DNA of 64,000 nt from Anaeramoeba ignava BMAN (GCA_028826165.1 JAPDFW010000114.1:744001-808000); one strand, 5' to 3'. Shown: positions 11,910-17,700, counted from the first letter of the stretch. Made by a program: numbers and translations. The notes: generated from the sequence alone by a model not told the origin.

Positions 11910-14903
11910 ATGATTAAAAGTGAATCAACAACAAGTTCAGAATATATAAAAAGCCATCAATCTTCACGTTCTAATTCTGATTTTTTAGAATTACATGAAT
12001 TAAACCCATTTAGATTAGAAGAAATGGGAAAATTAAAAATAAATGAAGAAATAGAAGAAAATGAAAAAGAAAAAGTTGAAAAAACTGAAGATTTAAATAA
12101 ATATTTTGTTTATCAAGGAAAAGGTGTTTATTGTCTTGATGATAATGATATTGTAAATTTATTTCAAAGTGAAAAATTATTGCCTTCTGATTCATCTACT
12201 GTTACTTATCAGGAGCCTAGTTTCGTTATATCAGTTTTACCTGCAGAAAGTATTAATTATTTTCAAATATTTAATTTAATATATAAATTATTTGAAATAT
12301 TTAAATTGTTTTCAAATATTTAATTTATTTTGAAATATATAAATTAATATTTAAATTAATATTTAAATTATTTTGAAATATTTAAATTATTTTGGAATAT
12401 TTAAACACTTAAACCATTTTTAATTTAACTATTCAAATTAATATATAAATTATTTTGGAATATTTTAAAATTATTTTGAAATATATAAATTATTTTGAAA
12501 TATTTAAATTATATTGAAATATTTAAATTATTTTGAAATATTTTTATAAATTATTTTGAATACTTAAACCATTTTTAATTTAACTATTTAAATTAATATA
12601 TAAATTATTTTGAAATATATAAATTATTTTGAAATATTTAAATTATATTGAAATATTTAAATTATTTTGAAATATTTAAATTATTTTGAAATATTTAAAT
12701 TGTTTGAAATATTTAAATTAATATATTAAATTATTTTGAAATATTTAAAATTTTTAATTTAACTATTCAAATTAATATATAAATTATTTTGAAATATTTA
12801 AATTATTTTGAAATATTTAAATTGTTTTGAAATATTTATATTAATATTTAAATTAATATTTAAATTTTTTAAATTTAATATTCAAATTAATATTAAATTT
12901 AAATTAATTTTAAAAATTAATATTAATATTTAAATTATTTTGAATATTTAAACACTTAAACCATTTTTAATTTAACTATTCAAATTAATATTTAAATTAT
13001 TTTGGAATATTTAAACACTTAAACCATTTTTAATTTAATATTCAAATATTTAAATTATTTTGGAATATTTAAACACTTTAAACCATTTTTAATTTAACTA
13101 TTCAAATTAATATTTAAATTATTTTGAAATATTTAAATTAAAATTTAAATTAATATTTTATATTAAAATATTTATATTAATATTTAAATTAATATTTAAA
13201 TTATTTTGAAATATTTATATTAATATTTAAATTAATATTTAAATTATTTTGAAATATTTATATAAATATTTAAATTAATATTTAAATTAATATTTATATT
13301 AATATTTAAATTAATATTTAAATTAATATTTAAATTAATATTTATATTAATATTTAAATTAATATTTATATTAATATTTAAATTAATATTTAAATTATTT
13401 TGAAATATTTATATTAATATTATTTATATTAATAAAACAAAAGTTTGGCTTCTGATTTTTGAATACTTAAAAGTTCCAGAAGTAATAAAAATATCAATGG
13501 TATGCAGAGATTTTCAAGATCTTACATACGATCGGGAATTATGGAGAAGATTAGCAATAAAAATCAACGAAGTATTCATTTGGAACAAACTAAGTGTTGC
13601 CGAACAACGATTGGAAGAATACAAAGTAATTGGATATCAACTAAATATAGAAAACGAAATTATTTCACTTCGAAAAATACAAGAAGAAAAAACAGAACAA
13701 GAAATAAACGAACAAGAAAAAGAAAATTTGCAAAAGAATTTGCGATCGGCTCGAATGCTCCAAAAAACAAACATTTCTGAGGACAGAATCCACCAGTTGT
13801 ACCAATCAACACCTCATTTACTTTCGGATAATCCTCCACAAAGAAATCATCCAATTTTATCAAATATTCGTTTATTAAGAAAAAAAGAAGTTGCCGATCA
13901 AGAAACTACAAAAAGAGACGAAAATGACGAACTTGTTCCTGTCGCAATTACTAACGAAAATACCCGCATGCAATATATAAACTTGCTTGAGAATCCCAGA
14001 GAATCGTTGATCGAGAAATTTATTGCGATGAAAAATCAATACGATGAAAAAAGGGAATTTCAAGCGCGCAGAGAACAAGAATTACGAGCACAAGAAAAGA
14101 CGCTCCGGCGCCGCGATACAACATCGTTTCTTTTCGGCATATTCGTCTGTCTGTGGCACTTCTCTTTGCTGATCTTCTTGATTTTGTTGAATTGTCGGAT
14201 CGAAAAAATCATTTCTATTGATTATTCAATTATGTTTATTCCAATGTTTATCACTTTATCGATTTCTGCTTTTTTTCTCTTCATGCTCTCCTTTTATGTC
14301 TATTCTGTGCATGACAGTTTTTCGATCCGTCTTTTCGCATCCGTTTCCGAAGTGTTGAATGTGCAGTTTCTATTGATTGCACTTAAACAAGATGACAAAA
14401 TAACAGCTAATTGGCCTACTATTTTTTTCCCGTTTTTTTTATTAGCGGCTTTCTTTGTGATTTTTATCTTTTGTGTTTGCATCTATGAATCAAGCCATCC
14501 AGCGAGTCTTTTTCTCCCGATGCTTACCTCGCTGATGTTTATGCTTTTTATAATATTTCTTGTTCTGAAACTCAATAGAAATATATACTGGAATTGGGCG
14601 TCAGTTTTTTCGCCTCTTTTCGTCATTTATTTACTCCCTTGTTTTGGTTGTTGCTGTGCTTGTTTGTCCCCAGAGGGCTGGGCTTTGCAAGCAATCTCGG
14701 GAGCTGTGTTTATAATATTGCTTCCGTTGGGTATTTTCCAGATCCTGCTTGCATTGTATCTTGAGGGAAATGATAATGTTTCCTCAATCAGTTATGTTTT
14801 TATTCCTCTTTATATCCTGAATGGATTCATTTTCTTCTTCACTGGCCCTTCTTGTTTTGTTTTAACTTGCCAGTTCTTTTTTCTTCACCACGATATGTGC
14901 TAA
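11910..14903 (+). CDS. F-box protein with C-terminal multi-pass TMEM185/TMEM60-like membrane domain; exons 11910-12249, 13444-14903
   Basis: Removing intron 12250-13443 restores SVLPAEIWLLIFEYLKVPEVIKISMVCRDFQDLTYDRELWR (F-box). The C-terminus has ~8 TM helices with repeated W/Y-x-x-(I/V)-F-x-P motifs (NWPTIFFP, WNWASVFSPLF, SYVFIPLY). Confidence 0.75.
12250..13443 (+). repeat. 1194-nt repeat-expanded intron (TTAAATTATTTTGAAATAT and TTAAATTAATAT units)
   Basis: GT at 12250 and AAG ending 13443 flank the tandem AT units. Confidence 0.8.
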
Positions 14904-15112: not shown

Positions 15113-17700
15113 TTAATTCCTTTTTGTTTTCGGTATAAAAAATGGTGAATTTGGTAATCTTTGTTTTAAATTCACTGATTTAATGATCCAATCAGGATTT
15201 AAAATTTTCACGTTTTTTGATTGTTCAAAATATTTCTTTAATTCTTGATCCCAAAAACTTAAAGAAGTAATTATATGAGTTGTTTGTTTTGGAATAAATT
15301 CTGTATTAATTTCTCCTTCATAAGCAACCACAATCCTTTTCAAATCATCAACTCGTTGGATTTGGTTTTCTTGATAAAAGAGCACATAAATATCTTTAAA
15401 TATTGAAAGAAGTGGAGATGGAAACGAATATTTTCTTTCACAGAGAAGTTTTTCTTCTTTCAAACAATCAAAAACCCAATGTTTATTAACAATATTTCCT
15501 GAAATTTCATTTACTTTCTTAAAAACTTCATTCTTTTCCCCACAAATCAAATGTGTTGTTTGATTATTCAAAATATTCCATTTTTCAGATATTTTTCCTC
15601 CCATTTGAAGAATGGCATCTTTTATTTTGTTTGTTTCTTTGTCATCAAATCCTGTAATCAAAGCATTGATTTCTTTCATAATTTGTTTTAGCAAATGATT
15701 CTTTTTTTTTTCATTTTCATTTTCATTTTCATTTTCATTTTCAATTTCATTTTCAATTTCCATTTCATTTTGATTTTGATTTTGATTTTCATTTTCATTT
15801 TGATTTTCATTTTGATTTTCATTTTCATTTTCATTTTCAGATATAACTCCAGAATCATTATAAACAAATATTTCCAAATTATAAGAAGTCAAAATATCCA
15901 ATAAAATATTTTCCATTTTTTCCCCAAAAATTTCATAAGTTTTCAAATTAATATGAACATCTGCTTCCAAAAAAAATGCTATACTTGCCAATCTTTGCAA
16001 ACTTAAAACCATTTTTTCTTCATCAATTTTGTTCCCCATTGTATGAACTATAAGATTGCAAACATAAACAATATTGCCATTTGTCATTTTGTTATTATCA
16101 ACTTCCACAACTTGAACATCACCAAGAAATGAATTTGTTTGATTTTTATAGCATTCTTGATAAAAATCCTCTGTTTGTTTCCATTTTTGTGAGATTGATA
16201 CAGCAATTGGATAATTTTGCCAATCACCATTCACTGAAACTAAATGCATTATTATCGCATTACGAATTTGCTTTTTCTTATTAAATGTTGCGCAAGGAAA
16301 CAGAAAATCATCATCAAGTCGTTTGATAATTTTCCTTGGTTTTGGTTTCAAAACCTCTGCATTATATGTCCATTTATCAGTAAATTCATCATATTCTTCA
16401 TTCACTAAATTTGTTGATGTTTGAATTATTGATTCCTGTTTTTGATAATTTTGTGCCTGTTTTGCTGATTCAAAAAATTGGCTCAATTCTTGCAAAGTTG
16501 TTGGTAATAAAGCATCCTCTTCACAAATTTTAACAACTTTCGGGAATCTTAATGAAATATTATTAGCTGTATGTCTTGGTGATTCAACAAAAACATTTGC
16601 TTTCACTTCCCAAATTTGACTTTTTTGTGGATCTTGAACTAAATAATCTGGAATTATTTCTGTTGTCAAATTCAACCATTTTGGTATTTCTTTTGTTAAT
16701 TTCATTCCAAGACAACTTTGTAATTTATTTTCCGCTATTGTTTTTTGTTTTACAAAATGAATTCTTGTTATTTCTTTTCTTATTTTCCTTTCTTTTCAAT
16801 TTATTTTTGTGAATATTACACATATTTGATTTAAATGCACAAATACAAACTGTTTTATATTTTTTAGTTTGTTCATCATAAACTCCAAGAAGAAAAAGAG
16901 GAATATCATTTTGGAATTCTTTTTGTTTTTTTTGTTTTAATATCCAAATCAATTCAAAACATTTTTTTTTACAAATTTCAAATTACTTTTTTTGTAAAGT
17001 CCCAATACAATTAAATTAAAAGGACCGATAAAATTATCCTCAATTTTTTTTAAATTATCTTCCATTATTTTTTCCAAAGCAATTCCTTTTTGAAAATCAG
17101 AATAAGCATTTCGACTAATTGCATCCAAAACAACTTTTTGATTTAAATTATTTTTTAAATATCCGAGTAAAATCCTTAAAATCCAAAGAAAATCATCTAA
17201 ATTGATTGATTGATTAATTGATTAAAATAAAATTTTCTTTTTCTTTTTCTTTTTCTTTTTAAATATAAACCTTTTGTAATTGAAGATTGAATTAAAGATT
17301 TCAATAAATTCTTCTTTTTTCGTGAACTTTCTTGGTTAAATTTTTCTAAAAAATCATGAAATTCTTGAATTGTTATTTCTTTTTTCCTTTTTTTATTTTG
17401 ATATGAATCAAATTTTTCTGAAATAAAAAAATCAATTGTTTTAATAAGATCTTTTGTTTTTGAATAATTTTCTGTTATTGCAGAATTTTCAATTCCAAAA
17501 AGAGAACAAATAAAATCAATTGTTTTTTTTTTCTTTAAAAATTTAAAATTTGGAAAATTAAATATTAAAATATTAATTATTAGTTTTTTTTCTGAAATGG
17601 TTTGTAATTTTTGGTAAATAAATTGTGTTTTTTTGCTTTCATCTTGTTCTTGATTAATTTTATTTAAAAGAACACAAAATTCATGAAATGATTCTGACAT
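15113..17700 (-). CDS. DNA ligase III-like protein lacking the adenylation domain: DBD-OB-macrodomain-BRCT-BRCT, 786 aa; exons 17700-17271, 17196-16987, 16918-16820, 16734-15113
   Basis: Four exons splice in frame (2361 nt). DBD: FHEFCVLLNKI, DDFLWILRILL, VLDAISRNAYSDF. OB fold: NLIVLG, FLLGVYD..KYKTVC, PKWL..PDYLVQDPQKSQIWEV..HTANNISLRFPK (Lig3: PSWL..PDFIVPDPKKAAVWEI..HTADGISIRFPR). No KxDG motif. Confidence 0.8.

Follow-up and report, generated by a model that had tools for sequence, protein, structure and literature searches.

A gene of Anaeramoeba ignava appears to encode an orthologue of DNA ligase III (Lig3) that has lost its nucleotidyltransferase (NTase, adenylation) domain, and we hold with moderate confidence that selection has kept it as a non-catalytic adaptor of PARP-linked repair. 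The gene lies on the minus strand at positions 15113-17700 of the window, the 64,000-nucleotide, very AT-rich stretch of DNA that was analysed (C104:744001-808000 of the 42.8-Mb assembly G000). Four exons (17700-17271, 17196-16987, 16918-16820 and 16734-15113) give 786 codons plus a stop. The product is identical to P0001, the 786-aa NCBI protein "DNA ligase 3 [Anaeramoeba ignava]", encoded on a contig of 1.03 Mb. This match ruled out a dictyostelid origin, to which the AT-richness and the Asn/Glu repeats had pointed. We checked the gene model exon piece by exon piece against P0001, and the whole-protein analyses used the P0001 entry. The pieces 17272-17700, 16988-17194, 16821-16916 and 15116-16732 (minus strand) correspond to residues 1-143, 145-213, 215-246 and 248-786, the codons for D144, K214 and S247 being split by introns. 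The last exon (539 residues) is 100% identical to P0001. The three introns, of 74, 68 and 85 nt, each have GT..AG ends and a length that is not a multiple of 3. The uninterrupted 786-codon frame described in a previous sequence-only reading of this window was borne out by the exon translations and the intron borders.

The gene has close neighbours on both sides. One of them (13497-14903, plus strand), tail-to-tail with it at a distance of 210 bp, encodes a membrane protein that is TMEM185-like and matches an F-box weakly at its N-terminus. The second neighbour starts at about 17792 (plus strand), in head-to-head orientation, and under 100 bp separate it from the start codon of the Lig3-like gene; its first residues, MKFGKFL, look like an SPX domain. 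The segment 18001-20000 has a GC content of 0.4% and consists of short tandem units, and its six-frame ORFs are repeated LIKLFIK.

The assignment to Lig3 is supported by the DNA-binding domain (DBD, PF04675), by the C-terminal BRCT domain (PF16759) and by the best solved match, which is Lig3. In addition, the named top database matches are Lig3 proteins from animals and protists. Pfam found a complete DNA_ligase_A_N domain at residues 4-171 of P0001 (65.5 bits, E 9e-18, model positions 1-174 of 174), and the DBD, which aligns to that of human Lig3, extends over residues 4-178 (17093-17691, minus strand, including intron 1). Residues 98-111 of the DBD (window 17368-17407) are rich in Lys and Arg and otherwise unremarkable. 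An N-terminal PARP-like zinc finger was sought in P0001 with Pfam and was absent. Since several catalytically complete protist Lig3 proteins also lack this finger, it does not define the lineage.

The NTase domain is missing. Pfam gave no DNA_ligase_A_M (PF01068) match in P0001, even at E 10, and no K.DG motif was present in the protein. In the phmmer alignment with human Lig3 (3L2P), residues 83-192 of the A. ignava protein matched chain residues 94-201 (DBD) and residues 203-336 matched chain residues 436-577 (OB-fold domain, 61.6 bits), whereas chain residues 202-435, the 234 residues of the NTase domain, had no counterpart. Among 181 homologues having both domains, the median distance from the DBD end to the OB start was 245 residues, against 21 in A. 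ignava; the next smallest positive spacing was 150. A local tblastn search of the 64-kb window found no NTase-like fragment. These results agree with the sequence-only reading, which had described an intact Lig3-like gene without an adenylation domain or KxDG motif. Its list of expected domains held for DNA_ligase_A_N, BRCT and the lack of DNA_ligase_A_M, but DNA_ligase_A_C gave only a sub-threshold Pfam match.

In the place of the DBD tail and the NTase domain of about 230 residues there is a junction of about 25 unassignable residues (179-204; 17015-17092, minus strand), delimited by the 3L2P gap, HMM scores and model confidence. Over residues 175-204, the DBD-end HMM and the motif IV-V HMM each scored about -1 bit, and pLDDT in the structure model was below 50 over residues 171-189. 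Different alignments placed residues of about 180-218 differently. One MAFFT run suggested an NTase remnant at residues 190-218; this was rejected by HMM scoring, in which LIVLG...FLLGVYD fitted the OB start (8.6 bits), as the sequence-only reading had it, rather than an NTase piece (0.6 bits). The junction lies wholly within exon 2. Thus, the earlier statement that the DBD runs into the OB fold within one exon was correct, but the linker is about 25 residues and not about 12, because residues 179-204 have no assignable homology.

The OB-fold domain covers residues 205-340 (16454-17014, minus strand, including introns 2 and 3), as delimited by phmmer, the OB-start HMM and the structure model. 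The model was confident from residue 200 or so onwards (pLDDT 93-97), and Foldseek matched it to the OB domains of Lig1, Lig3 and Lig4. Motif VI (residues 309-320, RFPKVVKICEED; 16514-16549, minus strand) was partly changed in an alignment with 10 Lig3 orthologues. It reads LRFPKVVKICEED in A. ignava and RFPRVxKIRDDK in the family, with the second Arg replaced by Lys and RDDK by CEED; erosion of this motif had already been claimed. The sequence shows a protein that can neither self-adenylate nor seal nicks, because the NTase domain has gone, along with the motif I lysine and the AMP pocket, and motif VI is eroded. This is in line with the prior description of a catalytically dead ligase.

The OB fold is followed by a macrodomain of the ALC1/TARG1 class (residues 378-544; 15842-16342, minus strand), identified by profile matches, structure modelling and Foldseek. 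As a single sequence it matches the macro-like protein BT1257. An iterated search found the same macrodomain directly after the OB domain in 36 of the 171 collected homologues. A model built from the homologue alignment reached a pLDDT of 90, and its top Foldseek matches were BT1257, a Streptomyces macrodomain, ALC1, Poa1p, TARG1 and DarG, with the PDB entries 2AFC and 5E3B among the matches. Furthermore, a profile of the Lig3-attached macrodomains matched the ALC1 macrodomain at E 3e-32 and that of TARG1 at E 3e-21. The ALC1/TARG1-like macrodomain recognised in the sequence-only reading is thereby supported by model, structural matches and family profile alike. It is the only ALC1-type macrodomain in the A. 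ignava genome. Residues D723 and G750 of ALC1 are functionally important, and the ALC1 mutation G750E abolishes poly(ADP-ribose) (PAR) binding. The macrodomain of A. ignava, of the same fold class as those of ALC1/CHD1L and TARG1, keeps the Asp equivalent to D723 (D389), whereas the equivalent of G750, a Gly in most homologues, is Pro422. In addition, 3 residues are missing from the second ligand loop relative to other Lig3 macrodomains, so that A. ignava stands out within this family. Because of this substitution and the shortened loop, ADP-ribose reading by the macrodomain seems doubtful.

A low-complexity linker rich in Asn, Glu and Gln (residues about 546-590; 15704-15838, minus strand) separates the macrodomain from the BRCT domains. 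It was the source of most spurious matches within the organism's own genome and swamped the word-based homologue searches. The first BRCT (residues 595-685; 15419-15691, minus strand) was found by Pfam at residues 598-671 and by the BRCT genome scan at window 15461-15682; its best solved match was BRCT1 of XRCC1 (2D8M, E 3.4e-8, residues 595-689). The second BRCT (residues 688-768; 15170-15412, minus strand) is of the Lig3 C-terminal type (LIG3_BRCT, PF16759, 42.3 bits), and the genome scan matched it at window 15176-15406. Both kinds had been named correctly beforehand.

Comparison with known relatives showed that the macro-BRCT-BRCT tail is the usual architecture of protist Lig3 and that only the loss of the NTase domain is unusual here. 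The tail occurs in catalytically complete Lig3 of Naegleria, Dictyostelium purpureum, Gefionella, diplonemids, Capsaspora and others, with a full NTase domain every time. The macrodomain of Dictyostelium Lig3 has been published (Gunn et al. 2016, PMC5087659). The best database matches of the A. ignava protein were such proteins, including those of D. purpureum (F0ZSY6, P0013) and Naegleria gruberi (D2W3T0, P0019). They share with it the order DBD, OB, ALC1-type macrodomain, BRCT and Lig3-type BRCT, and many likewise lack the N-terminal zinc finger. Where A. ignava has its unassignable residues, however, all of them have a complete DNA_ligase_A_M domain that includes KYDGER. Human Lig3 resembles the A. 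ignava protein in its directly alignable DBD and OB domain and in its Lig3-type C-terminal BRCT, but it has a zf-PARP finger and an NTase domain, both missing in A. ignava, and it lacks the macrodomain and the internal BRCT. The A. ignava protein also resembles XRCC1 in its first BRCT, which is nearest to XRCC1 BRCT1, and in the non-catalytic scaffold role proposed for it; it differs in having no XRCC1_N domain (PF01834) by Pfam, that domain being encoded by a separate gene on C67. The suggestion that the gene merges the roles of Lig3 and XRCC1 was not upheld, since the tail is ordinary in protist Lig3 and A. ignava has a separate XRCC1 gene.

A literature search found no description of a ligase pseudoenzyme of this kind. 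One database protein, the "DNA ligase 3" of Nephila pilipes (P0066, GFS87919.1), has zf-PARP, DBD, a partial OB domain and a Lig3 BRCT without an NTase domain. This absence is most likely an annotation artefact caused by missed exons, because the draft-genome model also lacks part of the OB domain. Another protein, P0003, was considered as an orthologue from a sister species and rejected, its nearest relatives being Heterolobosea. Neither A. flamelloides nor A. pumila was represented by an orthologue in any of the homologue searches.

Constraint on the individual domains was expressed as the similarity of the A. ignava protein to 19 full-length orthologues divided by the similarity among those orthologues. 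The ratio was 0.38-0.52 for the DBD, 0.64 for the OB domain, 0.67 for the macrodomain, 1.09 for the first BRCT and 1.00 for the second. Among the 20 sequences, the A. ignava DBD and OB domain were the most diverged and its macrodomain was third lowest, and its BRCTs were average. Stops account for about 10% of random codons in the A. ignava genome, and the chance of 786 open codons at the base composition of the exons is about 1e-36. We also simulated neutral substitution towards the local base composition in 323 N-terminal codons, leaving out window 17368-17407 and ignoring indels. At an amino-acid divergence of 5% the frame was still open in only 13% of the replicates, and at 12% in 0.6%; because indels were ignored, these rates are conservative.

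These values bear on the possibility that the deletion killed the enzyme and left a relic that is becoming a pseudogene and has acquired no stop or frameshift yet. Such decay would be in keeping with the divergence of the DBD and OB domain, the eroded motif VI, the altered ligand loops of the macrodomain and the failure to find an orthologue in the searched data from other Anaeramoeba species. However, despite the high stop frequency the frame is intact over its 786 codons, as are the three canonical introns, and in the neutral simulations stops appear once divergence reaches a few percent. Moreover, the BRCTs show the degree of conservation seen in functional orthologues, and the OB domain and macrodomain still give confident folds. 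We therefore consider a decaying relic unlikely, though it is an explanation to be taken seriously. The gene is probably still in use, on two indirect arguments: neutral drift would soon close the frame, and in a dead gene the BRCTs would be expected to decay with the other domains.

The A. ignava genome was searched with PF01068, PF04675, PF04679 and a bird Lig3 query; the search was six-frame, and its results are a lower bound. All other ligase NTase, DBD and OB matches belonged to one gene, Lig1 (C58:255261-258882). A full-length Lig3 elsewhere, which the sequence-only reading had proposed to look for, was not found, Lig1 and the Lig3-like gene being the only ones recovered. Two further matches were rejected as ligases: the NTase match on C138 is an mRNA capping enzyme, and the weak DBD match at C58:230561 is an ankyrin/BTB protein. 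No NTase domain, DBD or OB domain of the Lig4 type was detected in the assembly, and the absence of Lig4 is tentative, because a six-frame search gives a lower bound. Tentatively, then, the genome has no detectable catalytic ATP-dependent DNA ligase besides Lig1. Ku-domain loci, by comparison, numbered three or four (on C109, C64 and C93).

A search for XRCC1, also proposed earlier, led to a probable orthologue at G000:C67:459768-463603 (L025:1251-5104). It comprises two XRCC1_N exons and a Lys-rich linker, followed by exons whose best matches are XRCC1 BRCT1 (2D8M, E 2.8e-8) and BRCT2 (3PC6/1CDZ, E 0.003). An apparent stop at L025:2479 needs to be spliced out if the exons form one gene. The idea that this XRCC1 has no BRCTs was rejected, as the BRCT scan showed the BRCT1- and BRCT2-like exons just downstream. 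PAR signalling is represented in the genome as well, by more than 25 matches to the PARP catalytic domain, by two genes for PARG and, on C61, by a PARP1-like gene that includes zf-PARP pieces. Among the PARP-domain matches, 9 genes or more are arranged in tandem on one strand at G000:C78:56115-87290.

From these observations we propose the following course of events. An internal in-frame deletion would have removed the NTase domain from an ancestral protist Lig3, leaving a protein in which the DBD, OB domain, macrodomain and both BRCTs are still encoded and predicted to fold. Selection would then have kept this protein as an adaptor, with no catalytic part of its own, in the PARP-dependent repair of strand breaks. 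By analogy with the vertebrate XRCC1-Lig3 complex, its C-terminal BRCT may bind the BRCT2 of XRCC1, which has its own gene; human Lig3 is found in complex with XRCC1, whereas the pairing in A. ignava, like all binding partners named here, is proposed from the vertebrate case. A link to PAR made by the PARP1-like enzyme would be provided by the first BRCT and perhaps also by the macrodomain, and Lig1 would do the sealing. The remnants of the DBD and OB domain, under weaker constraint, may add general DNA affinity. Nick recognition, the weakest part of the model put forward in the sequence-only reading, requires the zinc finger and the NTase pocket in Lig3. Since the A. ignava protein has neither and its DBD and OB domain evolve fastest, nick binding by it is doubtful.

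A reason why the chemistry could be spared may lie in the organelles. In animals, what makes Lig3 essential is its catalysis in the maintenance of mitochondrial DNA. The hydrogenosomes of Anaeramoeba are not known to contain DNA. Given that Anaeramoeba has hydrogenosomes (PMC11550330), the mitochondrial role of animal Lig3 provides a plausible reason why ligase chemistry would be dispensable in A. ignava.

Alternatively, the protein may have been recruited to a use unrelated to XRCC1- or PARP-linked repair. It might bind DNA or chromatin as a regulator, or it might compete with Lig1 or Ku by keeping them from nicks or ends, and the fast evolution of its DBD and OB domain would then represent adaptation and not relaxation. 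The accelerated change of these domains within a preserved frame, the altered macrodomain pocket and the presence of Ku with no Lig4 detected are compatible with such a use. However, nothing positive points to any role of this kind, and the conserved parts are exactly the XRCC1- and PAR-linked modules. A new use of this sort is accordingly quite improbable.

It is very improbable that the real gene has an NTase domain and that its absence reflects an artefact of assembly or annotation: the assembly is indeed Nanopore-based, with Illumina polishing and with RNA-seq mapped to the assemblies (PMC11550330), and NTase-less Lig3 models do arise from annotation, as in N. pilipes, but the junction is in frame inside one exon and the introns of this 2.6-kb gene are at most 85 nt, so that there is no room for a hidden exon, and the searches found neither an orphan NTase domain of the Lig3 type elsewhere in the assembly nor any NTase-like fragment in the window. 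Short-read contigs from four runs in two studies hold 70-94% of the words sampled stretch-wide, a weak point against an artefact, as the junction words are not separated in this figure.

The adaptor reading, a Lig3 without its NTase domain kept for PARP-linked repair, thus continues to be the one that we favour. Its fuller form, in which a selectively maintained Lig3 pseudoenzyme arose because loss of the organelle genome allowed the chemistry to be deleted and the XRCC1/PAR-linked scaffold role to be kept, is more tentative, and we place it somewhat short of an even chance. Non-catalytic nuclear roles of Lig3, such as break sensing and XRCC1 scaffolding, are still debated. The claim is a lead rather than a result, concerning one gene in one genome. 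If it is true, the A. ignava gene would be a natural separation-of-function allele, revealing a nuclear role of Lig3 that is independent of ligation, and would offer a natural experiment on the non-catalytic roles of this protein. DNA ligase would then join the enzymes that have pseudoenzyme descendants.
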